DNA of 64,000 bases from Takakia lepidozioides (taxonomy: Eukaryota > Plantae > Bryophyta), in assembly GCA_030704615.1 (NCBI GenBank), contig CM060731.1, positions 82,026,001 through 82,090,000 of the forward strand, in the 5' to 3' direction. Below, piece by piece: positions 5,678 through 29,641 of the stretch. Position 1 is the first letter of the stretch. Every line of letters begins with the position of its first letter. The notes beneath the pieces are model-generated. The model did not search any database. It was not told where the DNA came from and was given only the letters and a program-made list of their open reading frames with translations. The position numbers and the translations under genes are program-made.

Positions 5678-7248
5678 TCATTCGACTTGAGTATAGGGTT
5701 TCTTTTTGGAGAATTTGGAAGTCATTTGTGATTTGCAGCACCACAATATTCTGAAGGCAATAGGATTCAGAACGGCGAGGTCACGCACAGCCCTGCATCG
5801 GACCTCGCGCATGAAACCATGGAGATCTTCAAAAAGGTGTTCGCAGTCCTCTTTCCGCACTCCCCAAAGGGCTGCAAGTCCTTCACGCACCTGGATTCGG
5901 GCTTCCTCGTATGGGGGCATGCCTCCGTACATGAAGTATCCAATCTCCAGGAAATTCTCACCCGCATTTGTAATGGCACATTGGCCATAAGATGATTCGC
6001 AGAGTTAACAAGATGGAGTTTCGGAGAATTGACATAGGTTTCATGTTGTGAACGTGAGACATCCAAACCTGACGGAACACCCTGCTGAAAAGCGGAATGT
6101 TTGGAGGTGGAGCGTGGTGGCGAGCAGCCTCAAGAATGACCATCAACCTATCATATTCATCCTCAGAATGTGTGAACATATCGGGGGGCAACTTAGGGAT
6201 CTCACCTGCTGCAACAATTTGGTACAGAGGGGACCAACCCCAGATTCCCTCCTGTTTCTCATCATATTGTTCTCTATCCCATTTTGCCATGTTGTCGTCA
6301 ACAAACTGCCTTCTACGAGCCTCCAACTCAGACTGGGCTGCAACTCCTTTCATTTCGAAATCCAACAATGCCATGGCATACTTGTGATGTGCCATCACCA
6401 GTTGGCATTCCGCCAACTGAGCGGGATGGTCACGAGTTACTCCAGGACATATGGCAAATAGCTCCACCACATTTTCCACAGCTCTCTTCTCCTCTGGAGG
6501 TGCATCAAACTGCTCCCCCGCCATTGCAGAGTCATGGAGCTGGTCAGTAATAGAGGAAGACTAACCAAAAACCCTAAACTTGAAAGGCAACTGCAAACAA
6601 AATGCAAAGACACGCATAATCAAAGAAGGAGTTGTGACCATGAAGGTGCAAGCCAAGAAGAAGGTGTGTTACCCGTCGTTTAAGCCACCATTGACCAAAA
6701 GCGTTGCCCATCATTTGGTCCCCGAACTCAAATTTCCCAATAAGAGCCACAAGACAATTGAGAAAAGAAGGCTCGTCTAGAGATGGAAATCCGTCGGGCA
6801 ACAAGTCGAACTTCATCAGATAGGTCAGTCTTGGGCATGAAACAGGTGCGGGTATGGGAGGCACAACAATATCCGAGGTCAGTAGCAACGACGCCTTTAC
6901 AAAGCCTTCCCTGGCCTCTTCTCTACTTAGCGGTGCATGGGGTGTGGACTTCACAATGTGCACTGGAGGTCTGCCATCTTGTCTACCTGAAGATGCAACT
7001 CCAACGTGCACTTCGGGTCGAAGACTTTGCTGTGGCATGGCAGGAGGTCCTACAAACGTAAACTTTACAATGCGCTCAGATGGAAGACTTTCCTGTGATG
7101 GCAGAGGTGCGTCCAATGAGTCCTTTCGAATGCGCTGAGGTCTAACAGTCTGCTGTGGCAGCGCAGGTGGTGCGTCCAACAATTGGAAATCGTCATCGTC
7201 ATCATCATCGTCAAGGTCCACTCCCGGCTCCTTCCGAAGACTCATGTG
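5678..7248 (-). CDS. Uncharacterised multi-exon gene inside CACTA-2 (probable exons ~7248-6673, 6539-6069, ~5960-5678)
   Basis: Three successive long minus-strand ORFs. The first intron has in-phase GT/AG; the second acceptor is unclear. Acidic/Pro-rich N-terminus and no recognisable domain. Confidence 0.45.
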
Positions 7249-7809
7249 CTTCCTGCGCTTAGGTTCTCGTGTAGTCTCCACGACTAAAACATGAAGCACG
7301 CAAATGGACTGCAACAGACAGAAATGGCAAGCCAACTGATGGTGCAGGGGGCAAGAAAAAAGCCTTGAAGGACTTCAATGTCATTTTGAGGCATCGGGAG
7401 GATGTCGACATGGGCTGGCTTCCTTGTCCACCAGGTGTGTATTGCCCTTACCACGGTTCGTGCTACTGCATTTGAGTTCCTAGTGGTTCTTAACAATTAT
7501 GTCCCTGGGGCCTGGTGTTGTTCTCATTTCATTTCTTGTCACGGCCACATTTTCACAATGCCGATGTTGGTGTGCAGGCTGTCTTGACTATGGGGAATCC
7601 AGCCTACATGACAAACTTGAGGCTGCCCGACAAATCCTCCATGAGGTCCACATTGAGAGGCTCGCAAGGGATGAGGCACGTTTCTGCAATGCCAAGTGTG
7701 GACATAAGAAGGCGGCTGTCCCTGAACTGCAGTCAAGCGCACTCGTTCACCTGAGTACAAATACGAACATGGGGGCACTCATTTTGGCCGCTAACATGGC
7801 ATGCAATTC

Positions 7810-9259
7810 CACAGCTTCTAGTGGACGACCATGAACCCAAACCGCCGTGTATGAGGTCGCAAATTGAGAGGGGCCCCTTGCAATGTCTTGCACCAAATCT
7901 GAAACCACCTCACCTTTCGCAATGTTATCCTCTACTTCAGTCCGAAGCCAATGGTGGAATGAACTTAGAGGCTGCAATTCCATGGGCAATTCTTGTGAAG
8001 GCACATTCCTACGCCGGCCCCTTGCTTGCAGAGCGCGTGTAGTCGCCCTTGCATGGTTCCGCCTCCACGCAACCGTCTCCTCCTGTCGTTGCTGAACAAG
8101 GTTATTGTATCGTGCCTCCCACTCATTTATGGATGGGGTGTTATTCAGTATGAACTCATGCGCTTGGTTAATCACCATGATGGGTAATTTTATCCTCTTT
8201 GAATTTTTGGGCAAAACGATGTCATTGGTTCGTACATCCTCATCTTCCTTCCACATCGGAGGGGCTTCCTTATCCACCCTTGCTAAGTACTCCATGCAGT
8301 AGAACATAGCCTCTTGCAATGTATACCCCTCCACCATGCTACCCTCCGGGTGTGCCATTTGTCTTACATGTGCTTTCAAAGTCTTCATGTATCGCTCAAG
8401 GTAGTACATCCACTGAGAATGAACGGGGCCGGCAATCGAAGCCTCTTCCACTAAGTGCACTACCAAGTGCACTTGGATGTCAAAGAAGGAGGGAGGAAGG
8501 TGCATCTCCAACATACACATGACCACCGCCGCCTCCTTCTTCATGCGTGGAAAGTCCGCTTCCTCCAACTCTTTGGAGCAAATCCACCGGAACAATGCTC
8601 CCAATCTATAGACTGTCTCGCGAACCTCGGGAGTCAATGTCCCACGTACTGCAATGGGCAAGATGTCTTGCAATAGATTGTGATAGTCATGACACTTCAA
8701 ACCATGGACCCCGTCTTCGTTGAACTTCATACGGAGGGATGACCCATAACCAGTTGGTGTTCGGACAGCTCCTATGGTGGCTATCACTTTCTTGTATTCC
8801 TCCTTTGTCCATTGCCAAGGTACACGCCTATACTTCCACCGTACAACACCCTTTGGGTCCACACCATTTTCTTTGGCCTATAGATGGGGCATGTGACCCT
8901 GCTCCTCAAATTCCTTTCTAATACCGAGAGAATCTCCTTTCACAGCCACTCCCTTCTTTGCCGGCGTGCCATGAAGAACACGAAAAAGGGACGAGCAAAC
9001 ATTCTTCTCAATATGCATGGGATCTAGAAGATGACAAATCTTCAGGTCCTACACATATCCCCACCCACAAATTCTTACACGTCTATTTTGTCCTGAAAAT
9101 GACAATGGAAATCATACAAAACCTGCAATATCATATGCATGCATAGCAATATTGATGGTGTTTTTGTGGAATATGTACCACCCAATATGACAACTCGTAG
9201 AAGATTGAAAGCCGCTTCATGCCGGGCACCTCCACCTCACCGGACCCCTCCGGATGGGC
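7810..9259 (-). pseudogene. CACTA TnpD-type transposase fragment (end of Transposase_21 region plus DUF4218)
   Basis: GMKRLSIFYELSYW (9259-~9182), then an exon from 9048 reading DPMHIEKNV...GLKCHDYH...PPSFFDIQVHLVVHL...GPVHSQWMYYLERYM...HPEGSMVEGY. It has an in-frame TAG near 8879, is truncated before DUF4216, and is cut by the LTR at 9260. Confidence 0.9.
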
Positions 9260-9390
9260 TGTTAGAGGGCTGCTTGGGACTTAGACGCTTTTACGGGTTC
9301 TGTGGGGTACCCTTAATTTTTGCGCAGATTTATGAATGGTAGACTGAGACTAACAGGAGCCTTAAGGGTGGCAGACGCAGGCTTTAGGGG

Positions 9391-9690
9391 GGTTACACAG
9401 CTCATCACAGTCTATCACAGCCAGACACAGCTTTACACAGCCCGACACAGCTTCGCACAGCCAGTCACAGCCCGACACAGCTTTAGACAGCTCGTCACAG
9501 TCTATCACAGCCAGACACAGCTTCGCACAGCCAGTCACAGCCCGACATAGCTTTACACAGCCCGTCACAGTCTATCACAGCCAGACACAGTCTAACACAG
9601 CCCGACACAGCTTCGCACAACCAGTCACAGCCCGACACAGCTTTACACAGTCAATCACAGCTCGGCACAGCTTGACACAGCCTGTCACAG
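9391..9690 (+). repeat. Tandem array of 30 x 10-bp units, each ending in CACAG or a close variant
   Basis: Examples: ctcatcacag tctatcacag ccagacacag ctttacacag cccgacacag. The 10-nt register is unbroken. Confidence 0.95.
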
Positions 9691-10910
9691 TGTACATGCG
9701 GAACAATTATCATTGACAGGGAACGACTGTGTGGAAACGACATGTGCAGAGGGAACGTGTTACTTCAGGGGTGACGGTTAGTTAGTTAGGTGGTTAGAAC
9801 AGCTTGCGGGTAGATTAGGTAGAGCGGCAACAGGAAAGGGATCACTTCTTGAGGAGGGGGACTTGTTCAGAAAAGGGGAGACGTAACGGAGAGCGGAAAC
9901 AGTGAAGAGGAGATGATGACTTGATTGAGGCTTAATTCATGCAAGCTGTAAAATTATACAGTATGGTAGATTGGGGACACCATGGTATAGGCATGATACA
10001 TGATTAATCTTAATCCGATACTGAATCGATACAAACATACTATGTAGAGAGACATGAGAGCAGCTGTGGAATGAATGCATGATTAATTGGAACATAGTAG
10101 ATACTGAAGCAATGTGATGCTTCAGTATACACGGTAAGGTAAATTGATAACATGAAGGCAAGAAGGAATACAAATAGGAAGCGCAACCATGATTCACTAG
10201 CTGTAGGTCATGACTGTCGCGCGGCTTTTACTCACCCATCCCTTCGTTATCCGAGGCGGAAACTCCAAGATAGAAGAGTTGGAAATCTCTAAGTACTCAG
10301 CCCGCTCAGAACAATCAGTCATGACCTACAGCTAGTGTATCATGGGGGTGTTTCCTATTTGTTTTCCTTCCCGCATTCATGTTAGCTAGTTACCTTACTG
10401 TTGGTAATTAAGTATCAGTTTGCTTCATCAATCTATCGGATTCCATCAACTCATCCATTCATTCCACAGCTTCACTCAGATCTCTCTACACAGTGTGAGT
10501 ATGAAGTGTGTATCAGATTAATATCTATCAAGTATCAGGCTGAAGCCATGGAGTCTCTAATCTGCTCTACATTACAATTCTACTGCCTGCATTCATTAAG
10601 CATCAACAGATCCTCCTCCTACTCCGTGCTCTCCCTCTATCTGCTCAGAGATACGCTCTCTCCTCATTTCCCCCAGTGATGTCCGAAGTCTTCCCCAAGA
10701 AGTGCTCCTCCCACTCCTTTTAGCAGTGATTCCCCAAGAAGTGATCCAAGAATTGATCCTTTTCCAGTCCTTGCTCCTAGCTTTATCTTCCTACCCGTTG
10801 TTCTAACCGTTTCCCTCACTAACCGTCATCCGTGAACTAACATGTTCCCTTCGCAGGTGTTGTTCCCCACAGTCGTTCCCTGTCCTGCTATCCGTTCCCT
10901 ATGGTCGTGA

Positions 10911-11133
10911 CAGCTATGTCAAGCTGTGACTGGCTGTGTGAAACTGTGACGGGTTGTGACTGGCTGTGTGGCTGTGACGGGCTGTGTTGGCTGTGATGGG
11001 CTGTGTCGGGCTGTGACGAGCTGTGTTGACTGTGTCTGGCTGTGTCGGACTGTGACGGGCTGTGTTGACTGTGATGGGCTGTGTCGGCTGTGCCGGACTG
11101 TGACGGGCTGTGTTGGCTGTGACGGGCTGTGTA
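10911..11133 (-). repeat. Mirror tandem array of ~22 x 10-bp CACAG units in the other LTR arm
   Basis: Plus strand reads gctgtgacgg gctgtgttgg ctgtgatggg ctgtgtcggg, the reverse complement of the 9391-9690 unit. Confidence 0.93.
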
Positions 11134-11256
11134 ACCCCCCCTAAAGTGCGCTACTGTCACCCCTAAGGCTCCTGTTGGTCTCAGTCTGTGCAAAAATTAA
11201 GGGTACCCCACAGATCCCGTATAAGTGTCTAAGTCCCAGACAGTCCTCTAACATTA

Positions 11257-11706: not shown

Positions 11707-13886
11707 TCAGGTGAGTGGGGTACCAATGACTTGTGAATTGTGCAAGTATTTCCATGCCTCATGTCCTTTAGAGAAAATATCATCAAGGCCGAATTTCTGT
11801 GTTGACAAATTGTTCCAGGCCGCATGAAACCATGAACGAATTTGAGAATCCTTTTGTATCATAACTTTTGCCTCATATAGGTACATATGAGGTGGCACTG
11901 AAGGTAAGACCCAACGATCCCCACTGGAATAACTCAGAAAGCGCGATTGCATCTTGTGCTGCTCAATGTGATAACGTACCAGAAAACAAGCAGCGTAGTA
12001 TAACCCGCATCCCATGACAATACTTGCTACCTCCTTGGTCTTGGTATAAATGAATCCATGTACAACTTGGAAGGCAATTAATTCCTTCAACATGGTACCT
12101 GCCTCATGCCAGTACTGTGCAAAGTGATGATCCTCAATTGGTCGATTGTTCGGAAGAACTTTAGTTCTAGTTGCCACTGGCAGCCAAATGCGCATGATTT
12201 GATAGTAATGTACCAATGACTGCGGAGGACTAAATTCTTTCCAAGCCAAATCTAACATAATGGGAATTTGGTTGAAGGGCATAATCATAGCCCTACTGTA
12301 CTCCCTTGCAGCTGGAGTTTTAGGTGGGTTAAAAGCAGCATTCCCCATACCTCAGGCTGTGGTGGCTGTGGTGTGGCTGTTGTAACAACAGGGTCAGCTA
12401 CTGGCACAGTGACTTGTTGTGGTGTTGGTGGCACTGGCTCTTGTATCATTGGCATCTCCTGCACCTCCTGTGAAGAAGACTGAAAAGCCAAAGTTTTGGC
12501 TTGTAAATAAGAAGCCATTAGCTGTTCCTCTGGTATATAGACTCTTTTGTCGATATTTGAAGTGAGGTCCTCCACTTGAGTCTGCAGGCCGTCTACATCC
12601 TCCTGTAACTCCGCTATCCTACTATAGACATTGTCTATAGTAGTTGTGGCAATGTTCTGCACTTGCAGTCTGAGCTCATTCATCTCGCTTTGGGTGAGCT
12701 TTCGTGGTGCTTTGCCCTCCACTGGCCCTTGTGCTAACCAGACCTGCATAAGGTGGTTATCCACCAAGTTGCTTGTGGTTCCTCTGAGAGTGTGCTCCTC
12801 TCTGAGTTTGTACACATCTAATTGCTGTTGTAAAGCCTCCATGCGCTTCACATGAGGTTCAACCAAATTCGCATAGGCAGCAAGCAGATTATTGGCTTCC
12901 TTCCAAGCCTTGTTAGTGACCGAGATTTCATTTCTATTGGCCATGACCGTTTGTTGCAACTCCAGGATGTGCCTCTCTTGGTCAGATTCAACCTGTCTGT
13001 ATTGCTTGAAAGTATCCTCATTGCGACAGATTGTATTCTTCATATCGACAATGAGTTTCATTTGCTCAACATTCTCTTCCTCTGCCTTCGTACATCTTTC
13101 CGCTTGACTGTTTATTTCTGTTGTAGATTGGTCAAGCATAGTTGTGAGTGTAGCACATTGGATGGCCATCCTGTCATGCACTGTCTGCAACTCCATATGT
13201 AGTGCATTCACTTCTTGCAACTTGCTTTCATGCTTCACCTGCATTTGGTATAGCTGTTGCTTATGTGCTTCGTGCAAGTGGTCTTGTGTGAGGCCTGCCT
13301 CAATCAATTGTTCCTTGGCCAATTGCAAAGCCGCTTCTGTACTCTCCAAGTCTTGCTGCATTTTGAGAGTGACCTCTTCATCGACCTTGTTTGCACATTC
13401 TGTGGCAAGTCGAGCCTCAAACTCTTTCCTGAGTTCCTCCCTCAAAGCTGCCAATTGAGTAGTGGGAACATGGGATTTGACATAAGTACCCAACAAATTC
13501 AGTGTCCTGCTTATGGAACTCATAAGCATAGCCTGTTGAGGGTCATCTTGGTGAGCTTGCTGCTGTTCTCCCTGATCCTCAACAGTGTGATGCCTTACGA
13601 ACCATTCAGGCCATTGCCCCATGAGATTTTCTTCCTGAACTACTTCATCCGTCACTGGTGCTGCAGTGTTTTGACATTCTACCTATGGTACCTCCGTCAC
13701 AGGTGTGTGTATTATATGCACTGCAAGGTTTCCCTTGGACAACCGTTGCACCTCCGGAATCACTGTGTCCTTGACCATACCGGAATATTCATAGAGAAGA
13801 TCCCCCTTCTCAATTTCTGCCACCACCTGTTCTGTAGTGGGAATATCTAACCCTTCTTTTTCTAAATCAATTATTTCTGGTTGAAC
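11707..13886 (-). pseudogene. C-terminal half of the Gypsy extra ORF (long coiled coil plus unknown C-terminal domain)
   Basis: VQPEIIDLEK... continues in frame from ...PQVVHA at 28271. A single TAG lies at 13683-13685. The Q/E/L-rich helical ORF 12285-13655 overlaps ORF 11707-12348, probably through a frameshift. Confidence 0.7.
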
Positions 13887-14031
13887 TGCCACTACAACAA
13901 AAAGCGGCTTTTACGTCTCTGTGTTATGACTGCAAATGCAGTCATGGAAGCCATTTACGACTTCCTGACTCTGAAGACGTAAAGACCTAGTCAGTTGTGA
14001 CATGGCAGATATGACTCTCCAGGCTGGCTGT

Positions 14032-14725
14032 CACGTGGCGCCAGAGCAGCTGTGGGGGTAGTCATACACGCTGGCATTACTGAATGACTGAACGGACAGT
14101 GTAGTCCATGTCAGCCGCGGTGTCAGACAGACACGTGGTGGCTACAGAACATGCCACGTGTCAGACTGCGACGCCAGCCCTCACTGCCAGCTATGACAGC
14201 GGACGAGGGAATTAAACGACAGCACGTGTCGCGTCATAGAAGAAACGCGTGGTGCGACATATCATTGCCACGTGTCACTGTGGGGGACGGGGCTTCGCAG
14301 TCACATGTATGTCTTCATGGGGGAAATTTGGGGTCAACACGTGGCAGCATCTGGGGACACCATATGCCACGTTCGTGTGTGCCCACGTGCTGGACTTTCG
14401 AGAGCTGTGGTGGATTCTTGCCAGTCATACCTACGACTGGCGCAGTACGGTATATTCCATGAACAGGGGATTCCATGAGGACGTTGTAGTCCCAGGTGGT
14501 GCCACGTGCACGATCCTCTAAACCTCACGTGCTGCTTCGTAGACATACATTTGACTGGACGTTCTGCATATGGAGTCATAGGACCAACTGCGCGGGGACC
14601 TTAGGGGGTCACGTGTCGGAATGTAATATGCTCATACACGTATCATATTGGGTTCGGTACTCATGGTTATGACTCTAGACGGACACGTGGATATGCCACA
14701 GAGGCAGCCAATAGGGTGCCACGTG
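14032..14725. promoter_or_regulatory. Cluster of 12 CACGTG (G-box/ABRE core) motifs in the CACTA-1 left subterminal region
   Basis: CACGTG at 14032, 14132, 14155, 14223, 14269, 14338, 14384, 14503, 14526, 14610, 14684 and 14720; several are in ACGTGGC/ACGTGTC context. Function is inferred. Confidence 0.6.
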
Positions 14726-15108
14726 CATGTGCCATACAACATCACAATCATGTATACAGCAAGACTTTAGGCACAGAAGTGGCACAAAAGTGGCACAGAC
14801 GTAATTCTGAAAGACCACAATAGCAGCAACATCACCATCCAGCATCACCATTATCAACCACATATGAACAGCAACAACATAACCAACCATAGTGTGTGCA
14901 ATGGGGACATACCACCTACCACCACATTGCTCATTAATGAGGCATAAGTTTGCAACAACATGCATGAGAAAATCCAACATGTGATTGCTATCAAAATTGG
15001 ACAGTCAATTCAGAGAAACTGTCACTACTATAAGTTACCGTAGTTGCCAAATCCGGATGAGGCACAGGTGGAAATCCCCAAGAAATCCACGATGCTAGCC
15101 GACCTGCC

Positions 15109-18100
15109 TCATCTCTTTGTCTGCAAGGTCTTCACTAGTTTGTCACTCCACACAGTAATGTAACCTACAGTGTCTCCCAACTCAGTGTGATGAGGCTTCA
15201 TGGATTTGTTGTGATATGGTAGAGGGGCATTGGGAATGCGGACATCATCAATGTGGATGGCCACATAGCCTTCTGGCACAACAGGGTACCCTTCACTCAC
15301 CTCCATCCCTTGGAGACCAGCAATGCGGCCAGATCCGGCTGTTGATCGCGAAACAGTGTCTATGAGCTTGACATGGTCTCCCACCACGAACTGCCATCCC
15401 AGCCCAAACATGGCAGATTGCATGAGAATTGTGGAACATGGATCGTGGAACGTATTGTGTCTACAAGGTCTACAAGGAGCTAATAACAATTTGTCTATCC
15501 AGGTCGGGAAGGGGAGAATAGCAGATGCATACACTTACCCCATTCTGCGAATCAGGGATCAGTGGTGTCGGCTTCCTCAAAGGGTGAAGGTGTGCTGCCC
15601 TTTGATTTGGGGGGCCTCGTTCGTGGCCAAGCACCTACAACCAACCAACAAGCACCAAAAATGTATATTATCTACACTGGGAACTCAAATTACACTAACA
15701 CAATAAGATGCACCCAAACTGTCAATGCCTACAGTTGACACTGCGACAGTAATTTGACAAACTCTATCACAACATGTTTTACTGCCACAACTTAAGCACA
15801 AATGAGGCTGGCAATGGCACAAGGGAGTCACACAAAAATGCCTCTAATGTCTGGCACTGTGTACCACACTACAAAGTATGTTACCTGGCGAGGCTGAATG
15901 GCTCGAGGGCTGATAGCTTGTTGCCCAAATGTGGGTTGCCCTTTGAGATATTCTGGAATGCTCGGAGCCTTAGCTGCCCCCTCCAAGAAGGGCCATAAGC
16001 TGGTCAGAAGGAAATTATCATTGTGCGCCTCTACAGAACGACTTCTCCAAGGCAGTGGGAAAATGGCGCTGTATGCTGGATTTTTTGACCCCTTGTGCGG
16101 TGTGTCGTCAACAAGAAGAGTGGTTTCAGGATTCCAGACACAGTTGTCCCGCCACACTGTAGATAGGTTCTTCAGAAACCGTGGTTTCATGGGCAGGCTC
16201 CCATCCATGTCAGTGGACTGCTCACAATATCCCCCATCCCACTTGAATGCAAGGTCACGGTGCCCATGGAAAAGCCAGTCCACTGTGGGTAGGAAGTTAC
16301 GTGGTTGCATACAAGACCATGCTGCCACTTCAAAGTGTTCGAAACACTTGTCCAAAAAAGCTTTGCAACCAGGCCTTACAACGACCATCTTGCTACCACA
16401 TAATTTGTGCTCAAGGCCATTTGGAACCACAAACGCATTACCGCTCCCGACATGGACGCACTCACACAGCAATCCATTAATATCTAGGATGAGCAAATGC
16501 TTGCCCTTCTCCACTATTGTGTGCACGACATTCTCCGACATTAATTGAAGGTTGGGAGTGGAAGTGACAACCGTGGGTTGCTGGGTAATATCTGCCCGCG
16601 GGGAAACAAGGTCAATGTCCAGGGTTGTCTCAGATGCCCCCACCGCGACAGCAGCAGGCCGGAGTTCTGCATGCGCCTCCACTACCGCACAGTGTGACAG
16701 AACTGCACGAGGACGCGTAAGTTCCTTGGTAGGGGTGTCGTCCCCTCCACCTGGGCCAACATGCTCCACCTGCACATCATCCTCGAATGCATCAACGGGA
16801 GTGACGTTACCTGGTGACATGCCAGGCAAGTCAAACCTGTCCTCCAGACGTCTTGAGGCTGAAGGGCCAGCGATGCACGAGCTGTTTGCTATGGATGAGC
16901 CCACTAAGGCAGGTGAGGAAATGCTGATCCCAAATTTCTCAGCCATGGCCTTCTGGTACATCATCACATGCGATATTGTAGCCTTCAAATCCATCATATC
17001 TTTGTGTTGTGCACCCTGTGCTCTTTCCATATCCTCCACTTTGCGAGCAATTGCTGAATACCCAGAGGTCCCCTCCTGCCAGGTCCACGCAAGTCCATGA
17101 ACAACATGAGAACATCATGCCGTTGGTAGGGAAAATGCCTAGAACAAAATAATCGACAAAAAATGGGAGAAAGAATGATCACGTGGATCTCACCATCCGC
17201 TCGCTGGTCAATGTTCTGCTTACTGAACCTTCCTGGATTTCATGCAACGATGGACTTCGGCCTCGCTCCTTTGCCTGCATTTGTCATGTACCAGCTCAGT
17301 ATGCTAGCATGGTCAACCTGACGAGCGACATACCATTCTGTGACAACAGTGATTGAACAGAGGTTTGTCAGACATACTGTTGGGATGCAACCAATATTGG
17401 TATCCCCGCGCCCACTAACCTAGTCACTATGTCTGCAGTAATACAGAGAGCTGAGTGACAAATGCAGCTAATGCAGAAGAGTAATCACCAGCACAACACT
17501 ACCCTATGTTAATGACCACAAAAAGTCATGTTAACACTCACACTCACTCTCACTATTGCAGTTTCAAATACTGCCCTGACATCATCATTGCACGACAACT
17601 CTGATCAGACCCTCCTCTATCCACACTTACAGATTGGTATGTAAAATGAGGACCCCACCCACTTCACAACTTTGCCAGGTTCGGGTAATCCGGGTTTTCT
17701 AGTAATCCAATAATCCGGGTTTTCCAGATATCCTCTAGAAAACCCTTCACACAAGCATCAATCTGCTGGGTGTGATTTGCCCAAAAACTAGGCCTCAGGA
17801 AGGCCTGGGCTTTTGGCTCAGCCTCTCAACTTTCAAAGTTGGTGAACAGGGGTACAGGCACAATTCCCTTGATTGAATTGAAGACAACGTCTCTTTGGTG
17901 AGAGAACCCCGGACAGTGTATCAGAAAATGAATATGTCTTCAGATTGCCCACACAACGGACAATTGCACTCTCCCTTTCCTCTCTGCTTCTGTTTGCTGT
18001 TCAAAGGTAGGCTTGCTTCCTGCCCTGAGTTTAAATTTCAGTCTAGTGCCGAGAGTGGGTAGACCCTTGAGGTCATCCAAGATGTCCACCCCCATGTCAC

Positions 18101-21100
18101 TGACTAGAAAGAAGTTCAGGGAAGTTCTCTGCCTAACTTCATTTCATCAGACAATCTCATGGCTTCAGACACTACAGCCTCTAAGGCAGATTTATCCAGC
18201 AGGGTCAAGACTTGCGGATCCAGGTCCAGGTCCTTGAGAATCTTTTCTACTCTCTTCTGCCAGGACTTAGCCTGTTTGACAGGGCGGTCCTGTTTCCAAG
18301 ATATAGAGTCGATCAACTTAGGATATCTGGTGTTGGGCATATGTTGCAGCTGACCCCACCATCTGACCTTGAATTCATCTCGTCGGGAGCTTAAGGATGG
18401 AATGCCAAACTCACCCCGAACAACCACATTGGCTGTTTTGGAGCATGCTGACATACACTCCTTAAGCACCCCCACTTGAATGGATTCTAGAGACTTAGCC
18501 TGGTTGGAGCTATCAACCCATATAGCAGATCTGTACTCCAAGGCAGGTCCCCCCTTAAAGAAAAGCCTTCAAGCACCTTGCGACAAGGTGAATGAACACT
18601 TTAGTTCACTCCACAGGCAACACCCCTTCAAGAAAAACCTGATTGCCGGGGACATAATTTGGAGAATTCAATGACAAAGCCTGGTGGCACTTCGTACTTC
18701 CCTCCTAACATGGTGTAAAATGGGGGAAATGGACACCCCATTATACATTGTACTCATAAGACGTTGTTTGCCGTAGCCTTCTGGCCATTGACCCCCGCCC
18801 AGTTTGAGCGGGAACAAAAGGAACAGAACCTACCTCAGTCAGGGGTTGACGTTGGTAGTAAGACTTACCTTCATATAAAGATTTAATCCGGGTTTTCCAG
18901 ATATCCTCTAGAAAACCCTTCACACAAGCATCAATCTGCTGGGTGTGATTTGCCCCAAAACTAGGCCTCAGGAGGGCCGCGGCTTTTGGCTCAGCCTCGA
19001 GAGTTTCAAAGTTGGTAAACAGGGGTACAGGCACAATTCCCTTGATTGAATTGAAGACAACGTCTCTTTGGTGAGAGAACCCCGGACAGTGTATCAGAAA
19101 ATGAATATTGTCTTCAGATTGCCCACACTACGGACAATTGCACTCTCCCTTTCCTCTCTGCTTCTGTTTGTTGTTCAAAGGTAGGCTTCCTGCCCTGAGT
19201 TTAAATTTCAGTCTACTTCCAACTTGTGGGTAGACCCTTGAGGTCATCCAAGATGTCCACCCCCATGTCACTGACTGGAAACAACTTCAGGGAAGTTCTC
19301 TGCCTAACTTCATTTTCATCAGACAATCTGATGGCAACAGACATGCCTTCAGACACTACAGCCTCTAAGTCAGATTTATCCAGCTGGGTCAATACTTGCG
19401 GATCCAGGTCCAGGTCCTTGAGAATCTTTTCTACTCTCTTCTGCCAGGACTTAGCCTGTTTCACATTATAAACAACAATCAGCCAAGGCAAAGAGGGCAA
19501 AAAGGCTGGTGTGTGAACTTACAAGCCGAGCCTCAACAGATGCCTTCCCACCACGTCCTGTTTTTGAAGGCTTCTTGATTGATGAATTTGCAACCTTCAT
19601 GAGGGCACTTTTTGCGTTGAATCCTGCTGTCTGCCAATACGATACCAGCCTGTCCCAATGAGCTTCCTTCAGATGCGCAGGCCTCCCCTCGCCTGCCTTG
19701 TACATTGCATGGATCTCGTGTCTTTGGGTTTTCAAGGCAATGCCAAGTGTCTTCCTCATGTGCTCATAGTCAAGACCACGTGGCGTGTACGCAAATGTAG
19801 AGTTTAGAATCCTATATATTTCTTCAATGACAGATTCATCCTGCGCTGCAATATGCATTGACATGTCACACAAACGCCACATCTGGCCTTTGAGGGCTGC
19901 ATGCCAGGTATTGCGTGCTGGTCCAATGGGCTCTCCAGCTTTGTCAACCGGAAGCACTTGAGGGGGGAGTCCATCTTCGTCTCGCGCATCATGGTTTCGG
20001 ATTGCCTCTGCCCTGGCACGCCTGTTCGCCCGCCTCAAAGCATTAGCTCGCTCCTTCTTGGTCATAGGGGTCTCTTCCTTTGCCACCTCAGGTGGTGGGG
20101 CAGCTGGGGGTTGCCATGGGGAATGGGGGGCGGGACAGTATCGCCCACCGTATGGCCCAAAAGGTTCGTATGGTGGACGTGTAGATGCCGGGTAAGCATG
20201 TGGGTCTAGGAGGTAAGGGGGAATAGGTGGAGGAGAATGGGCATATGGCTGCTGTGGGTAACCACCTGGAGGGGGCTTGTATTGGATGTGCGGGTTGTAA
20301 GGGCCCGCAGCGCCATACTGATCGGGGGTGGGGTAGGCATGTGGGTAATGTGTGTACGGAGGGTACTGTGGAATAGGTCGTGGAGGTGGTCGTTCTGCGC
20401 TTGGGGACTTGTTTGTAGCAGGGTTGACTTGTTTGAACAACCCCCGCCCCGATGGACTGCCCACCACAGCTGCAGCGCCTTCGATGGAAGCTCGCCTCTT
20501 CCTGGCCTGCACAGAATAAAAACCAATTCAAACATTAAAGTCAATCAAAGCATTCAAATGAAATCATGGCAACTTAGAACAAATTAACGCCGTGCACCTG
20601 CCATTTTAAAGCTTTGATTGTACTCATCCTCCTATGAGCAGGTCCTCATCCCCTCAGACTCATCAGGTGCCCCACACTTCTGTTTACCCATTCAGAAAAG
20701 TGGGGGCTGAGCCAAATCTACATGGCCAATTCCAAAGCCTACCTAGTGGGGAGACCTCAAAAACCATTGGCATGCTTGTATCAAAGCGTGCATACAAGTA
20801 CTTGCATCAGTGGGTAGATGGACTCATTTGAATGGACATTGCATTTTAGTTGTAAACAGAAACATCACTATGTATCAACCTCTTAGTAAGAGCCTTTGAC
20901 TTTAACCCAAACTATGTACACGATGAAGATATAGCAAAAGGGGTTGATTTCCTATCCCATTGTGGGGTTTCACTGCCTATATGCTCGGGCATCCCTTCCT
21001 TCCTACATCCCAATTTTTCTAGCAATGCCATCTCCCCAATGTGAAATTCCCAAAGTGAGAACTTTCCAAATGTGATTGCATTCAAAGTTGTGCCACGTCC

Positions 21101-21450
21101 ACTGCCAGATTTTCTGTGGCTTCCACCTTTCAACCTCTTCTGTGTGGGAAGTGCATTTACATCCTGGAATGCTAAGAAAGTCTCAGACACGTTCTGTACA
21201 TTTGCATGCTTCCTTCATGGGTATGCTGAGCATGTGAATGCATAGAAATGCTGAAGATGTGGCGTCATAGTGAGGAGGTGCTTACAGATGGTGATTTTGC
21301 CGGCGACGGGCGTTTCTGGGGAAGCGAGGGTGCAGGAGCTGGGTGGCGAAGAATATCTTCGCTAGAATCGCCAGTGTGCTCGCCCGCAGGGACACACAAC
21401 AAATCCTCCTCCTCGTCTTCGTCTACATACTGTCGTGCCTCGTCGGCCAT
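15109..21450 (-). CDS. CACTA TnpA-like protein: Pro-rich region, Transposase_24 (Ptta/En/Spm), FCP1/NIF-like HAD phosphatase domain, C-terminal TNP1/En-Spm (DUF8039-like) domain; exons ~21450-21286, 20506-19523, 17274-17194, 17075-15885, 15634-15539, 15390-15109
   Basis: All junctions are GT-AG and phase 0, with no stops. Transposase_24-like: HWDRLVSYW...KTGRGGKASVEARL|AKERGRSPS. FCP1-like: LLILDINGLL...VRPGCKAFL...AAWSC...FLKNL...TLLVDDTPHK...NPAYSAIFP. C-terminal TnpA-like domain: GDHVKL...PEGYVAIHIDDV...APLPY...LGDTVGYITVW. The 5' exons are uncertain. Confidence 0.82.
17686..18550 (-). mobile_element. Non-LTR retrotransposon (LINE) ORF2 3' fragment, copy A, in the TnpA intron
   Basis: PALEYRSAIW...SLESIQ...VRGEFGIPSL..RR (post-RT region) and a C-terminal CPLCG...HFLIHCP Cys/His motif; frameshifted. 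Confidence 0.8.
18746..19463 (-). mobile_element. 5'-truncated LINE, copy B, with 7-bp TSD CATTATA
   Basis: Near-identical to copy A over ~18885-19460 and keeps the 3' end (...GGCAAACAACGTCTTATGAGTACAATG). CATTATA occurs at 18739-18745 and 19464-19470. Confidence 0.8.
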
Positions 21451-22057
21451 TGTTTCTAGCCTTCCACTGCGTCTGGGTGGTCCCGTGGGTAGTGGAGGTC
21501 GACGGCAAGCACGCTTTGGTTTCGGAGCAAGAAGCCTGCAATCCTCGCCCCATGAAGAAATTAACCAATCCCGCTCTCTTCATGGTGCGCCATGATAGTG
21601 TGGAGACAGGCGTCGCCTCACAACCATCATTCTGTGTACTTAGCAATGCAATCCCAACACTGGGAATGTAGAAAAACTCGTAAACCCAAAAGACAAGGAT
21701 GCGGGCAATTTCAGGCTAAACCGTAGACCTCTCACATTTTAAAAAAAAAACCCTAATGACAAGCCCCTGCAATGCGATGTCTGACAACCCCAAACTAAAG
21801 TATTCGGGTCAGTTGAGCACTCCGGTTGAGGTGGAATGCTCTCCTGCGAGATTTAGGCCACAACACTAGGGTGAGCCGCCTCTCAGTATACTCACAGTGG
21901 GTGCGAACCAAACAACTCCGCCTCAACCTCTTTGTTGCGAGCAATGCAGGTCTCCCTTAGCTTCTCATACGCAGTCAGAGGACCGCACGGGGAGGGCCTG
22001 ACCATGGCAGTCTGACATCAGCTGCAAAGACCCTTGCACACCCCCTGTGTAAGTACA

Positions 22058-25000
22058 ATGTATACAACGAGAGCGGGGTTTCGGCTAACAGCTCAACGAC
22101 TCCGTGTGCGCAGGAAAGATGAGAAACTGTGGCGACTAGAGGAGGCGCATGCCATTGCACAAGGGCACCGCAAAATATTGTGCAACTGCAAAATATGCCA
22201 TGGAGGGATCTCGCAGTTTCTACCGATGGCCAAAAAACACCTAACAAAGTATGGGAGGGACCCAAACCTTCGACAGTGTACAGTCCCGGTACGCCTTGCA
22301 CGACGCACGCACTCTGACATGCTCGCAGCACGCCCGCGCATGTCCGCATTTTGGACAGTCGTGGGAGTGACTGGAGTCCGAACTACGTGTCGTTCTTCCG
22401 TTGGATGTATTGGAGTCATGGAGTCGTAGTGATGGAGTCATGTAGTCGGTAGTGCGTCAGAGTAGTCATGTCCATGACTTCATGACCGTGGATCATGGAC
22501 ATTTCAACTACGTGGTGTTCTTCCATTGGTTGTACTGGAGTCATGTAGTCAGGGTCATGACTACATGGTCGTTGTTGACTGCCATGTGTGAAGGCAATAT
22601 GCATTTTGGGCTTTTGGCAGTTTGTTGCCATGTGTCATGCCTTCAACGCACTGCCCACTTGGGCATATTTGTTGAGAGCTTTCACTTTGTTGGTCTGTGC
22701 AGATAGCTGTCTGTATGTGGGGATGTCTCCCTCTATCACAGAGGGTATGTTTGTTTTGTTTTTCGATGAAAACTGTGTTCCTACTTTGCCGTATTATATG
22801 AGAGTAGTTTTCATTTGTGTTTGTGTCTGAGCTCCACAAGCTGCTTCGAAATGAAGTCTGTGGCCGACCAATTTCGTCTCCTGATTCGCAAGTGCGGGGG
22901 AGACTTGTAGCATTCACCTGTATTGAACTAGTGCAATTCTACAAAGTGTTTGCTTACATGACAGTGTTTAAATGAAATTTCATAATCTGGGAGTTTTGAA
23001 AAAAGCCTGTTCATCGTATCCCAATTTATGATTTCATTTGCGTTCACAGGGCTACATTACATCCGACTCTGAAGTGGAGGCTGAATGTAGCCTAGAGAGT
23101 GTTGCAAACGACGTCAATTTGGATGGACAAGACGGCAATGGGCTACGGGGCCAGATTGCCCGTGCTGTGCAAGATGCATTTGAAATATCAGATACCCTCC
23201 GGGAGAATCCCACACCTGCCCCAAATGCCCTTCACTTGGACAATGATGAGGCTGTTGAGAATGGCGCAAATCCCTCTGAAATGCCTGATGGGGAAAATAT
23301 GGGCGGAGAAGAAGCAGGCGCGCCAAATGATCTTCACCATGGAAAACTCATGCGAGAGTCCCAAATCCCCTTATACGATGGGAGCGTTCACAACCGATTG
23401 ACTGCCACATTGATGTTGCTCAATTCTTGCGCCACTCACAGATGTACCAACGCATTTGTGGATGAGTTATTTTCATTGTTGAGGCTGGAGATTTTGCCCA
23501 AACAAAACACCTTGCCGAAATCGCAGTATGAGGCAAAAAATATGATCGCCATGATGGGTCTAGGATACAAACAGATCCATGCCTGTGAGCGTGGATGTGT
23601 ATTGTTTCGTGGAGACCTCAAAAAGGCTGCTAATTGCCCCAAGTGCCATAGTCGTCGATACATGGACGGCCGTGGGAAGGTGCCCAAGAAGGTGTTGCGA
23701 TACTTTCCTCTCATACCTAGATTGAAACGGATGTTTCGAGTTAAGACGCTGGCAGAGCTCATGAAGTGGCACAACAATCATAGAAGTGCAGATGGCATGG
23801 TCCGGCATGCTGCAGACAGTAAGGCTTGGTGCCATATTGACAACACATGGCCGGATTTTGCTTCAGATCCAAGAAATCTGCGTCTTGGATTGGCACTGGA
23901 TGGGGTCAATCCTTATGGCACCAAATCCACTTCTTGGTCCACCTGGCCCATCATGGTGCTCAATTATAATCTACCTCCATGGTTGGTAACGAAGAAATTT
24001 TTTGTCATGTTAACACTCCTCATTCCTGGAAAGGAATTGTGACAAGTGAAAATGTGGATGTTTACCTGCAACCACTAGTGGAGGAGCTAACGACATTGTG
24101 GGTGGGAGTTGCAGCCGTGGATGTGGCAGCCATTGAAGGAGAGCGGGCTTTTAACATGCGTGCAGTCCTCATGTGGTCCATACATGACTTCCCCGCCTAT
24201 GGCTTGTTATCAGGTCAGGTTCACCAAGGGTACTGTGCTTGTCCAGCATGTGGACCTCAAGTCGATTCCAGATATTCCCCAGCTTGTAAGAAATTGATAT
24301 TCCAGGGGCATCGACGCTATCTTCCCCACAATCATGCCTATAGAAGATCCAGACTTTTTAATGGGGCGCGAGACATGAGACCTGCTCCACATACAGTGAC
24401 AGCCACCGAAATCAAGGAGCGTGCACGACATTACAAACAATGGATTGATGATGGTGGGACTGTAGGCGCACAGAACGATCCCTCCAAGCTCCATGGCGTA
24501 AAACGATTGTCCATTCTGTTTGACTTGCCTTACTGGGAGGTGCGATTACCACACATGTGTTTTGGGAACAAAACAGTGCATTGGTTTTTCATTGTGCATG
24601 ATTGTTTGTTTACTGAACCTGTGCTGTAAACATCATTCATGACTGCATTGCAATGTGCCTAATTTGTTAGACCACATGGTGCAGCATCTTATCATCCGCC
24701 ACACTTTTGATACCATGCATTGCGAGAAGAACGTGACGGAGAACATAATCAAGACTATTTTCGGCGAGAAGGACACGATGCAAGTTCGCCGCGATATGGA
24801 ATTGCAGGGCATTCGAAAGCCTCTTTGGTTACGACGCCATCCCACCAGAGTGGATACATTGGTAATGCCTGATGCGCCATATGTGCTCACAAAACCAGAG
24901 CAGCGGGTGTTCCTGGAGATTATCACGAATCTGAAAGTACCCACTGGCTATGCCTCTGCTTTCAAAAAACATGTGGTCAAACAAAAGTTGAGCCAATTGA

Positions 25001-26591
25001 AGTCACATGATTATCACGTGCTAATGCAACAGATCCTCCCACTTGCTCTACGTGGGTTGATGGCGCCTGGGGTTCGCAATGCCATACTAAGAGTGTCCCG
25101 TGTGTTTCGCAAGCTTTGTGCAAAATTCATTGATCCCACCGAGCATGAGGAATTGAAGAAGGAGGTGGCAGTGACTCTTTGTCTTCTGGAGAAAGAGTTC
25201 CCACCCTCATTTTTTGATGTTATGACACATTTACTTATCCACTTGGTGGATGAGGTGGATTTGTGTGGACCTGTAGCTTCTCGGTGGATGTACCCGGTGG
25301 AGAGAGCAATGAAGGATTTTAAAGGGTATGTGCGAAACTTGGCGAAGCCTGAGGGCAGTATGGCGGAGGGCTACGTGTTTGACGAGGCATTGGGATTTTG
25401 TACAGAGTACTTGTCTTCTGTTGATGCTACTAGGCGGAGAGTGTGGGATGCAGGAGAGGAGGAATCAGTGTCGGGCTGGGTATTGGAAGGAGTTGGTCGA
25501 CCACGGAGGTTGACCCTCGAATTGTTGCAGCTTGTCCACGACTACGTCATTCACAACCATCCCAGTTTGAGCATTATGTTGGGGTAAGTGGCAAACGTTC
25601 TGGTACCTGCTATGCATGGGTATGCTTTGTATAGGTGTGTGTGCAGTAGTTCTTCCATCGGCTGCAGGGGTTGCACTAGATAAATTTCTGTGGTTGTGCG
25701 TGTGTTGGCAGGTCCTATGAGGTGGAGAAATGCAGGTTGGAGACTGAAAATGCTACTAACCAGAACAAGATCCGTGCTCTCCCTCACTTTGCAGAATGGC
25801 TGGTAAAAGCAGTCCGCCAGCATGTGTCAAGTGTTGCCAACCATGCTACTGATTCAGCCTGCAAGGAATTGTTGGACATGTCCAAACCCCCATCAGTAAT
25901 CGCAACATCATACAAGAGCATGTCGGCTTATGGAAACCACTTCAGGGTTACTTCAGATGGACTCAACAGCCCCTTTGTGACATATGACTCGGGGGTCTCT
26001 ACTGTTTTCCAGCATGACAGTACTTGCATTGACCGTGAGCAGGTGGTGGAAAGCGTACGGTATGTGGGTGTCATAAAGGAGATTTTAGAATTGGATTATG
26101 GCTCCACAAACACCACGGTGCTATTGTGTTCATGGGTACGTGCACGACGTGTGGGCTCTCAGCCTGTGTCAATGAAGCAGGACGAGTCTGGCTTCACATT
26201 GGTGAATTTCTCCCACTTGTTGCCTCCACTTGAACAGCCTTTTGTGCTCCCATCACAGGTCGAGCAAGTTTTTTTCTCTGAGTGTGTGAATGAACCGAGA
26301 TGGAACGTGGTGCTGGAAAAAAACCCCAGGTCACGCAGGGCTGTTTCTGATGTGAGCATTTGCAACGATGATATTGCAAGTGTATCAGGCCTCTTAGCCC
26401 CCAATCACATTGAAGAGACCAATGTTGCTAGTGACAGGGTGGGCCAGACCATCCAAGTGACACCTGAAGAGGTTGCTTCACTTTACAGAGACATGCGATC
26501 TGAGGAAGCACATCCATGTCCCACGGAGGACAGTTGCGATGGAGATTCAGAGTCCAGTGATGAGGAGTTGGTTGATGTGGATGTGTACTAG
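22058..26591 (+). CDS. CACTA TnpD transposase (transposase-associated Zn domain, Transposase_21, DUF4218, DUF4216); exons 22058-22288, 23050-24539, 24685-25583, 25712-26591; one 1-bp frameshift near 24037
   Basis: ILCNCKIC...HLTKYG; IHACERGC; RNLRLGLALDGVNPY; SIHDFPAY; DTMHCEKNV; LKSHDYH; GPVASRWMYPVER; YVGVIKEILELDY; QPFVLPSQVEQVFF. Intron phases are consistent. Exon 2 is 1490 nt, one base short of frame. Confidence 0.92.
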
Positions 26592-28270
26592 TACCTAGAA
26601 TGAGGTATGACTTTCCCCCCCAACTGCCTTCCTCTATCTCAAGTATATGAAGGGTGGTATTGGGCAAAATTGAATATGTAATCCCGGTTGATTCATGAAT
26701 AATGTGGGATTCATAAGACTGGCACTAAGGGTTGCCCTTGGGGGTGTCCTTTTTGCAGGGTGTTGGAGGTGTCCAACTTACATGGCGTGTCTGTCTGGCA
26801 ACGTGTCATGACATTTATGTCACTATAGACTTTGGAACGGCATGCAAATTTACACATCAGTTCTGCCTTTGGGTACATTGTTGACAAAGTGCATGTGCCT
26901 TCCAGTTTACATTACATAATTGCCCCAGTGATTTTGTGGGTCTTATATTGGGCAGGCTCGTGTTTATGGACCATTGAATACCAATGGAGTGCTTTTAAGC
27001 TTGGTCCCTACTTATCATATTTTCATTTTTCCCCAAAAGAATCTGGCAATCCGCATAGATGATGCTTTGGCTGGTTGAGTGGGTTATTTGCGTAGATGCA
27101 TTTTATGGGCAGTTTCTCTCATGCCCCAGCTAACACCATGTGACTCACTTGTATAGTCCCCCATCTGTGAATGGCTCAAGCAGGGTGCAGTACATTCAAC
27201 ACTACAATGTTGCTGCCCTGCAGGTGTTCCATGCCTTGCACCACATCATTATTCCCTGATGTCATCCTGCTGCTGTTCTAGCTTGGGGCAGGTCATTGGG
27301 GATATGTACATTAGAGAGAACAACATGAGCTGTTATCTCAGTTTTTTTATCATACAAGAAGCTGAATTCATGGGCTCTCCCATTCTTAGAAAACCCCCCC
27401 ATGGCAAAGTGGGTGGATCGGAACAGACCGTATTGCCAAGCTTCTATTCCAGTAGCACATGGCGTGGAGCTCCGGAATGGCCTACTACAGGGACGACATG
27501 CACAAGGCGATATGTTAGAGTGTATTGGATTTCATATTTTCATGGTGTTCTTGGTCACTGCCCAAAGACTTTTGTTGAGCCCATGTTTTGCATCACTCTC
27601 ATGAGTGAATTTTTTGATTTGCATGAATTTAACTATCCCCTGAATGCATCATTTGTTTGTCTGTCATTCCGCAGTATGAGGCTTGCTTTTGATGTTGTCG
27701 GCGATCAACAAACACTAAAATGCACGCCGCCATTTGAACGTAACGTCACAAACAGATGCGGTTCCAGATCGCCTCTCTAGCATGTTGGCTTCACGTTCCA
27801 TTCTTCTCCACAAAGCGCCAACGGCCTACTAAGCTGCTTCGTGTGCAACCGTTCCCTTCACTTGCATCCCCCGCACCACAATATCAAAGCCACTTAACCA
27901 ATCATATGTAGACACCTCATAAGTTGTTCCATGTCACAGACTCTCCATGTCATGACGACATGTGATGATCTGGCAGAATACATTAGAGTGGCAGTCATGA
28001 AGTCATATGTCCGTCTAGCAATATGCACACGTCATTCACGTATGGGCATGACCCTGACTGGTAGTCATATCCACCATGGCAATATTCCTGGTCAAAGGGT
28101 GTTTGACCTGTGTTGCGCAAAGTTCGGAGTCATACAGTCGCATAACCGGCTTCGTCGTGATCTATGTTATGACTTCAAAAGGCATTTACGACTGCAAATG
28201 GCATTTCTGCCACAAATTGGTCGTGACTGCGCACCCATGGGAGTCATAAAAGCCGCAATCTGTTGTAGTG

Positions 28271-29641
28271 TGCATGGACAACTTGTGGTAAACTTGTGAC
28301 AAGCCGATCCTCTGGCTGTGATGGCTGTGATACTGAAGTAACTTCCTCTTCCCTCTCTGAAGGTCCTGCTTCCAGTAATAGCAGTTCTCTGTGCTGCTGT
28401 GCCCCTTCCTGCACAAAAACTTGGGAAACATTATCATGCGGATTCCGTGAAGCCAGTGGATCCGCCACTACAGTCTTTCCCCGCCTCTGTCTCTTATTCT
28501 CGGGTTGCCCTGCCAGTCCACCCTCACTGTGTGAAGAGCCTTGCTCTTCCATTGCAGTGGTTTCTGGCTCAAACACTTCCATCTCCTTTCTTTCTCGCGC
28601 ATCAAGTATGCCAGAATCAAGAATTATTTGAGCAATGATTGGGCCAGACACTATGATAGGAGATTTTGCGGCAGTGCCCTGTAGTCTTTTCATCTCCTCT
28701 ACCAGTGCGTTGTACATTATGTCCGCCCATTCTACCTCTTCTCCTCTCAGGGCTTTGAGTATTTCCTCTGTGAAGGATCTGCTCAAATACTGTTGGTTCT
28801 GTTTCATGGCAAACAGAACGTTCAATACCTGGCCTACCTCCTTTAGCCCTGGGTACACGGCCATGGTACAAGCATAACCCTGAGTTTTAAAGAAACTCCC
28901 TTCTTGGAATAAGTCCCCTATTTGCAGTCTTGCCCTGTGCTCCTCCACATGCACCTGACCTGCTGGCAATCGAAACAATTGCTGTAGGTATAGGGGAGTA
29001 ATTACTAATTCAACTCCCTTCACCGTTGTTGCTCCTGTCCTTGGTTCAAAGTTCTGCAAGAATTCTAACATGTACTGTCTATGGTGCAATGTCCAATCTT
29101 TGCTTTGCACTTGCAATCTCAGCTCCTTCAGTAACTGTATCGCATGTGGAGTAGCAATCGTTTGTTTCTGCAGGATTGTGGTGCTCTTCACCCTGATTTC
29201 CTCCATTCCTCTCATTCTCTTCATTCTAGACCCACAGAAATGTTTTGGCTGTAACAATTGAAGAAATGCATGTAGTGCACAAAGCATAAACGTATGGTTG
29301 CCACAAAAAGCTATGGGTAATTTGTTGTAAGCCTGCGGGGCTTGCAAGCATCGATCAAGCGAAAAGATCCGCTCCGTTCTTTCGTCCCTATGCCACTGCG
29401 TAAGTAATATTGCGAGCGTATAGTCTGTTAGTTCCTCCATAGCTTCAAAGCTATAGCATTGATGGTTTGTCCCGTCGAGACGCCTGTTACTTAGAACGAC
29501 GCCGACTCTTGCGCTTAATTTCCCTCCAATTTCTTGATCCATTCTCTGGCTTTCGATTGGCTGTAACCGCTGTGACTGGATTTTAGATTTAATTTTCTTT
29601 AGTGGACTTTCCCTGTTGGACTGTCCACTAGGATAACACAT
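28271..29641 (-). pseudogene. N-terminal half of the Gypsy extra (env-position) ORF, resembling the Athila-type putative plant transposon protein (Transposase_32-like)
   Basis: YMLEFLQNF...TVKGVELVITPLYLQQLFRLP...GEEVEWADIMYNAL...PIIVSGPIIAQII. It lies between integrase and the PPT and is cut at the CACTA TSD. Confidence 0.7.

Follow-up and report, generated by a model that had tools for sequence, protein, structure and literature searches.

The accessory proteins of CACTA transposons are classic controlling factors whose biochemistry is poorly known; TnpA, for instance, both represses and reactivates Spm. The ULP1 protease is known as cargo of KI-MULEs and CACTA elements, and in Tim50 the HAD-type NIF fold is used for presequence binding. 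In maize and Arabidopsis, TnpA is produced by alternative splicing or from head-to-tail tandem genes, and an atlas of Arabidopsis transposable element (TE) products, which states that TnpA-like domains are confined to flowering plants, mentions no phosphatase (PMC13547354). Here we describe a CACTA element of Takakia lepidozioides, located in a stretch of 64,000 nucleotides (contig CM060731.1 of assembly GCA_030704615.1, positions 82,026,001 to 82,090,000 of the forward strand; hereafter the window), whose second gene, open reading frame 2 (ORF2), carries a NIF/FCP1-homology domain. This domain is an integral, exon-encoded part of an accessory protein in the TnpA position.

The search of the window for CACTA-type ends returned one strong pair only, delimiting a complete element of 14,381 bp at 13890-28270. 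Its inverted ends start CACTACAAC…, and the two termini (CACTACAACA…) are identical at 17 of 20 positions, with the CACTA start of the CACTA/En-Spm superfamily. The element is bordered by a target-site duplication (TSD) of 3 bp, TGC, at 13887-13889 and 28271-28273, likewise as in this superfamily. At the empty site both flanks are stop-free and share one frame on the minus strand inside a gypsy-like element, which fits a clean insertion. Inside the CACTA element, a gene of the tnp2/TnpD type encodes the DDE transposase of the superfamily, as indicated by Pfam matches to Transposase_21 in the open reading frames 23038-24042 and 23979-24629 (E 4e-32 and 8e-35), to DUF4218 in 24655-25587 (E 1e-38) and to DUF4216 in 25722-26591 (E 6e-8). 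Together with the ends and the 3-bp duplication this confirms the CACTA assignment made in the original prediction, which had been drawn up from the letters of this DNA, and on these sequence features the element is apparently an autonomous CACTA transposon. The parts of the element outside ORF2 are the following:

13890-13909, plus strand: left terminal inverted repeat, 20-nt terminus CACTACAACAAAAAGCGGCT, sequence read
28251-28270, minus strand: right terminal inverted repeat, 20-nt terminus CACTACAACAGATTGCGGCT, inverted, sequence read
22034-27780, plus strand: tnp2/TnpD-type transposase gene, several exons, first open reading frame from ~22034, directed away from ORF2
22412-22564: internal cluster of six ATGACTNC sites, between or at the 5' ends of the ORF2 and transposase genes
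13926-14065 and 27991-28247: terminal clusters of ATGACTNC, at both element ends
14032-14725: cluster of 12 CACGTG palindromes, left subterminal, ~700 bp

Repeated subterminal motifs, a further property of the superfamily, are represented by the ATGACTNC and CACGTG clusters. The first motif occurs at 31 sites in the 64-kb window versus 11.1 expected, a count attained by no shuffle. CACGTG, which is G-box-like, has 12 of the 20 sites of the entire window within 14032-14725, and mapping of its sites over the window revealed no counterpart of this cluster at the right end of the element. As in En/Spm, short repeated motifs are present at both ends and near the promoter region, where a TnpA-like protein could bind them, and both arrays are candidate protein-binding sites. 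The gypsy-like retroelement in which the CACTA element sits lies on the minus strand at 11707-13655 and 28244-34324 (aspartyl protease, RVT_1), with its protease and reverse transcriptase located at 34324-32162.

ORF2 is the second gene of the CACTA element and occupies 21450-15109 of the minus strand, divergent from the transposase gene. Its six exons are stop-free, each has a length divisible by 3 and all are in phase 0, amounting to 932 codons, and a script check of the minus strand found GT-AG at every border of the five introns. The gene model consists of:

21450-21286, minus strand: exon 1, 55 codons, ATG at 21450, acidic N-terminus, then donor GTAAGC
20506-19523, minus strand: exon 2, 328 codons, open frame, AG acceptor, GTAAGT donor
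19522-17275, minus strand: intron 2, 2.2 kb, with a direct repeat of ~1.18 kb formed by two LINE-like 3' fragments
17274-17194, minus strand: exon 3, 27 codons, GT-AG borders, phase 0
17075-15885, minus strand: exon 4, 397 codons, helical N-terminal part, linker, NIF domain
15634-15539, minus strand: exon 5, 32 codons
15390-15109, minus strand: exon 6, 93 codons and stop, small C-terminal domain, acceptor ..ggcag, then open frame

Exon 2 is composed of a Pro/Tyr-rich low-complexity region, a basic stretch and a conserved C-terminal half. The repeats within intron 2 belong to families D11 and D19, with copies 1.17-1.18 kb apart at 17700-19500 of the minus strand and a zinc-knuckle tail. Like the TnpA gene of En/Spm, ORF2 is a second, multi-exon gene beside a tnp2/TnpD transposase. 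Unlike the TnpA genes of maize and Arabidopsis, it is divergent from the transposase gene and has no Pfam match to Transposase_24 or TNP1; and unlike any described TnpA, it carries a NIF domain and belongs to a moss-like rather than a flowering plant. We also considered whether ORF2 might be a host gene that just happens to be bordered by TE fragments. This was rejected, since a single element, defined by its TSD and by ends that match, encloses the gene, and a related gene was found elsewhere.

The original prediction had described a stop-free, phase-0 spliced gene of >900 aa, and the two junctions that it named (17194/17075 and 15885/15634) are those of our independently built gene model. 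Its labels for the parts flanking the NIF domain, Transposase_24 and TNP1, were not borne out by Pfam. ORF2 was searched, and its fold predicted, with one exon at a time as query. Pfam gave no match at E<=10 to Transposase_24 (PF03004) for exon 2, for exon 6 or for the open reading frame of a second lineage (L001, see below) that corresponds to exon 2, with single-exon queries for a domain that would span exons 2-4, and none at E<=10 to TNP1 (PF03017) for exon 6, exon 2 or the L001 frame. Both names rest on position and one weak language-model lead, and because of the Pfam results for exons 2 and 6 we refer to the gene as ORF2, in the TnpA position. In the language-model search, the clusters closest to the conserved half of exon 2 were unannotated Streptophyta; the lead ranked 8 (score 0.87) and is a cluster with Transposase_24 in 32% of its members, which we take as a lead only. 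For exon 6, the same type of search returned SH3-like small-barrel leads, all with scores <0.9, and the single-sequence AlphaFold (AF2) model was unusable (pLDDT 34). A small barrel at this position would at least not conflict with the small beta-barrel reported for the C-terminus of Arabidopsis TnpA (PMC13547354).

The NIF domain lies in frame within exon 4, confirming that the HAD domain is integrated in the protein and is not a loose fragment. Pfam recognized it as PF03031 with E 1.5e-15 (57.7 bits, gathering cutoff 21.8). A phmmer search of the domain against PDB sequences was blank, whereas the fold search gave matches: using an AF2 model built from an alignment with 15 relatives (pLDDT 86.7), Foldseek retrieved CTDNEP1, SCP1/2/3, UBLCP1, Tim50 and Fcp1 with E values of 1e-9 to 1e-5, probability 1.00 and TM ~0.6, which places the domain in the FCP/SCP fold. 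The domain and its motifs are located as follows:

16496-15966, minus strand: NIF/FCP1-homology HAD domain, exon 4 residues 194-370, PF03031
16493-16467, minus strand: motif I LILDINGLL, nucleophile Asp present, second Asp replaced by Asn
16325-16311, minus strand: motif II AAWSC, Ser kept
16178-16164, minus strand: motif III FLKNL, Lys kept
16118-16098, minus strand: motif IV LLVDDTP, DD kept

All four motifs described in the original prediction (DING, WSC, LKNL and DD) were located, with the first Asp, the Ser, the Lys and the DD kept and the second Asp replaced by Asn. The domain shares Pfam family and fold with SCP1-3, CTDNEP1, UBLCP1, yeast Fcp1 and the pseudo-enzyme Tim50, and, like the SCP/FCP enzymes, has the nucleophile Asp and the Ser, Lys and DD motifs, and so agrees with these enzymes in motifs II (S/T), III (K) and IV (DD). 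It differs from them in motif I, which reads D-I-N-G with Leu in the fifth position, that is DxNG in place of DxDx(T/V), and is 16-20% identical to the solved structures. Moreover, unlike the SCP/FCP proteins, it is embedded in a transposon protein and has no BRCT or other known targeting domain.

To our knowledge, no DxNG member has been assayed for activity. An exhaustive search of representative proteins returned 1210 NIF relatives, and for this reason we attribute the blank result that exons 2 and 4 gave in word-index protein searches to a limit of the index. The closest named relatives are host proteins annotated 'FCP1 homology domain' with 33-40% identity, among them proteins of Sphagnum (KAH8970694.1), Ceratodon (KAG0621609.1), Diphasiastrum, Ginkgo, Welwitschia, Helianthus (NIF and DUF724), Elaeis and others. 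In an alignment of 15 domains (the window NIF domain and 14 relatives) the motif L-D-x-N-G-L is invariant, and 27 invariant columns are shared with the plant DxNG subfamily, including R-P-x-C, W-S, K, DD and N-P; the WS, K and DD of motifs II to IV are among these columns. DxNG was found in 142 of 158 NIF domains in the 150 best of the 1210 proteins. This indicates that the Asn in motif I does not reflect decay, and on the evidence of these alignments it is a hallmark of a land-plant-wide DxNG subfamily.

Such conservation bears on the possibility that the domain has full Ser/Thr phosphatase activity, in which another residue or water would serve as acid/base and the carboxy-terminal domain (CTD) of RNA polymerase II or a small-RNA-pathway factor would be the substrate. 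The full set of metal- and phosphate-binding residues and the SCP-like fold are what such an enzyme would display, and an Asn conserved across land plants suggests selected chemistry rather than decay. Nevertheless, we regard full activity as quite unlikely, considering that DxDx(T/V) is described as the conserved catalytic site of the SCP/FCP enzymes, with Asp96 and Asp98 as its two Asp residues in SCP1 (PMC7281111).

The plant DxNG proteins, with which the window domain shares its invariant columns, differ from it in being encoded by single-copy-type host genes and often contain tandem NIF domains, DUF724 or CCCH fingers. Partner domains in the scanned NIF representatives were DUF724, CCCH fingers, a GeBP-type DNA-binding domain and RRM, and no transposase family was detected in any of the 90 representatives scanned. 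BLAST with exons 1, 2, 3, 5 and 6 against the 150 best NIF representatives was blank, implying that none of those 150 proteins shares the non-NIF parts of ORF2. In the phylogenetic tree, the window NIF domain and one TE-type relative stand on branches of ~2.0 versus a median of 0.34. With all rows included, the window domain falls outside a 69-row host clade (SH-aLRT 95); when the other long branches are left out, its placement shifts to within a 16-row non-angiosperm set (support 98). Concerning the suggestion that a DING variant also occurs in a host plant FCP1-homology family, the likely donor, the variant itself is well represented (142/158), but the donor was not recovered, as the tree points neither to a donor nor to a direction of transfer and the placement is unstable. 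It is a possibility that TE-borne and host DxNG proteins have swapped the NIF domain more than once.

Two further NIF proteins were observed in this comparison. In Riccia sorocarpa KAL3700794.1 (P0059), from a liverwort, the NIF domain reads LDVEG and groups weakly with the two transposon-borne NIF domains on the tree. An uninterrupted 912-codon open reading frame (P0014; L002 1727-4465, Logan SRR31724245) combines a DLNG-type NIF domain with a C-terminal Ulp1/C48-protease-like region, the latter with a weak Pfam match (0.0085) and with His and Cys motifs seen by eye; here, too, NIF is fused to a domain that typically occurs as transposon cargo.

The long branches of the TE copies would also be in line with a catalytically dead, Tim50-like scaffold that makes protein-protein contacts only, for example in ORF2 oligomerisation or docking of the transposase. 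This explanation gains further from the Asn found in place of the general-acid Asp in all members and from the presence of Tim50 structures among the fold matches. However, both TE lineages have kept the nucleophile Asp, the Ser, the Lys and the DD, and these residues do not vary in the host family, which would be unexpected if the phosphate/Mg site were irrelevant, and we consider the dead scaffold possible although doubtful.

The second of these lineages was found on L001, a 3.6-kb contig of run SRR15431198, which encodes P0008, the closest single-domain relative of the window NIF domain (42-46% identity depending on the alignment). The run consists of shotgun data of washed Takakia lepidozioides plants (PMC9021317), and L001 is genomic. 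Its gene is 37-46% identical to that of the window at the amino-acid level and has the same order of exon 2, mini-exon, NIF exon and mini-exon. The open reading frame 144-1520 has a Pro/Tyr-rich start, its last 146 residues are 37% identical to exon 2 (E 3e-27), and it ends in ...ARL|GT, the same as exon 2 in the window. The following mini-exon (1749-1850, 34 codons), with the shared core G-R-x-P-S-L-x-E-I, is homologous to exon 3; the NIF exon has the same opening helical segment and LDLNGLL as motif I, and the final mini-exon comprises 39 codons. All exon borders of L001 are phase 0 and GT-AG.

Nei-Gojobori comparison of the window gene with L001 yielded proportions of synonymous (pS) and nonsynonymous (pN) differences of 0.83, which is saturated, and 0.38 for the NIF domain, and of 0.75 and 0.47 for the conserved half of exon 2. 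The introns of the two genes are unalignable, yet conservation of the ORF2 protein between the two lineages is highest in the NIF domain. This implies that the fusion is old and that its coding capacity has been maintained, and argues for long-term selection on the NIF domain.

Evidence for transcription was sought in the two runs that cover parts of the window, X1 and X2, which are kept as contigs and whose RNA nature is guessed; X1 comprises 33 Mb of contigs. An X1 contig of 1,084 nt, derived from a ~90% identical sister copy, aligns to 15108-15347, 15540-15632 and 15883-16441 and joins exons 4, 5 and 6. Its joint 15632/15883 (equally 15634/15885, with ends CT..AC, corresponding to GT..AG on the minus strand) coincides with the exact borders of intron 4, and exon 5 is joined to a sequence starting TTCATGGTG, where the window has TTCGTGGTG at the exon 6 acceptor 15390. 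A further joint in X1, 17264->19543, fits the exon 2/3 junction, with 30 divergent letters versus 30 in the spliced model, and a separate 188-nt contig of this run maps to exon 2. Altogether, two predicted splice junctions are exact in the X1 contigs and a third is approximate. Removal of introns at GT-AG borders suggests that these contigs are cDNA-derived; a processed retrocopy is less likely. Of the two junctions proposed for an RNA check in the original prediction, 15885/15634 was recovered exactly in the sister-copy contig, whereas 17194/17075, the exon 3/4 junction, had no support among the contigs of X1 and X2, and neither had exon 1. The intron 2 repeat reached contig depths in the thousands in X1 and X2 alike, indicating a very abundant or highly expressed repeat. 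The sister copy also has an in-frame 24-nt deletion and a 6-nt insertion.

We assign a probability of about 0.55 to the whole reading, anatomy included, that ORF2 is the accessory protein of a CACTA element with a long-held NIF module that binds or slowly dephosphorylates a phosphoprotein; the functional part of it, which we infer, is by itself much less probable. In such a mechanism, the non-NIF parts of ORF2 would direct the protein to the motifs that are repeated within the element itself. The NIF module, which would keep the Mg/phosphate site (nucleophile Asp, Ser, Lys and DD) without the general-acid Asp, would then either bind a phosphoprotein of transcription or silencing in a phosphorylation-dependent way or dephosphorylate it with slow turnover. 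The foremost candidate target is the RNA polymerase II CTD, by analogy with the SCP/FCP enzymes and in view of the Pro/Tyr-rich region in ORF2, and the outcome would be that expression or transposition of the CACTA element is favoured. In a more specific form, the NIF module together with the Pro/Tyr-rich region would be a transposon effector that engages, at the motif arrays, phosphorylated RNA polymerase II, the Pol IV/V machinery or a small-RNA factor regulated by phosphorylation. We consider this form unlikely; if true, the effector would be a counter-silencing or transcription-capture device new among transposons.

Several observations weigh against a functional, selected module. The second Asp, the general acid/base of the SCP/FCP enzymes, is Asn, which makes normal turnover doubtful, and DNA binding is assumed, as ORF2 has no Pfam-detectable TnpA domain. 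The fusion is known solely from this genome and from Takakia-derived DNA, and two metagenome scans, one with an exon-2 alignment and one with an alignment of TE-type NIF domains, returned no relatives. Furthermore, the spliced contig originates from the ~90% identical sister copy and not from the copy in the window, and the assignment of run X1 to RNA is a guess. In the sister copy, a net 1 nt is missing at the G-run of the exon 5 donor (119 letters between two codon anchors), and this loss at the exon 5/6 border puts its last domain out of frame. Its differences from the window copy amount to 10 synonymous and 20 replacement codons in a partial count (33 of ~73 listed), which is not distinguishable from neutrality. 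As to the dN/dS check proposed for the HAD exon, constraint on replacement sites is suggested by the comparison of the two lineages, but not by the sister copy.

These latter data are also what a neutral passenger would leave behind, that is, a host fragment captured as in Pack-CACTA-like transduplication and intact because the copy is young. That the insertion is recent is indicated by the perfect TSD and the near-identical ends; in addition, the frame is damaged in the sister copy for which expression is visible, and the partial count of synonymous and replacement codons is near neutral. Against this, a ~40% identical lineage has the same open exons and all motif residues at a divergence at which synonymous sites are saturated and introns unalignable, and the NIF domain, rather than drifting, is the best-conserved part of the protein. 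A neutral passenger is, in our judgement, highly improbable, and we retain the reading of ORF2 as an accessory protein with a long-held NIF module.

Other features of the window were also recorded. The window is plant DNA, with a VARLMGL/DUF4378 host gene at 33-4939. Outside the 13890-28270 element, a second CACTA transposase remnant is located at 5958-8862 on the minus strand (DUF4218, E 3e-33). A 2-kb element at 9260-11253 has 69-nt inverted ends that are 90% complementary, with arrays of CACAGCnnnn at a 10-bp period inside each end (9343-9720 and, inverted, 10912-11132), and looks like a non-autonomous terminal inverted repeat or foldback element, not a long terminal repeat (LTR) element; a third, solitary CACAGCnnnn array is present at 29911-30212. 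Finally, two direct copies of ~5 kb (38004-42973 and 48056-52920; families D5-D18), 93-97% identical and ~10 kb apart, may represent either a tandem duplication or LTRs of very great length.

Full-text searches of the literature found no description of a CACTA or TnpA fusion with a phosphatase, FCP1 or NIF domain, in agreement with the earlier statement that none was known. As in the ULP1-carrying transposons, a DNA transposon here appears to retain a host chromatin- or transcription-related domain under selection; unlike ULP1 cargo, the phosphatase-like HAD domain forms part of the accessory protein rather than being encoded by a separate gene. The NIF-ORF2 fusion is old and integral, and apparently undescribed, a variant of the theme of transposons retaining host-derived regulatory domains. 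A conserved phosphatase-type domain in the CACTA accessory protein of an early-diverging land plant would offer an assayable handle on the contact between transposons and host transcription or silencing, and it highlights the DxNG branch of the CTD-phosphatase family, which is large, uncharacterised and spread across land plants.

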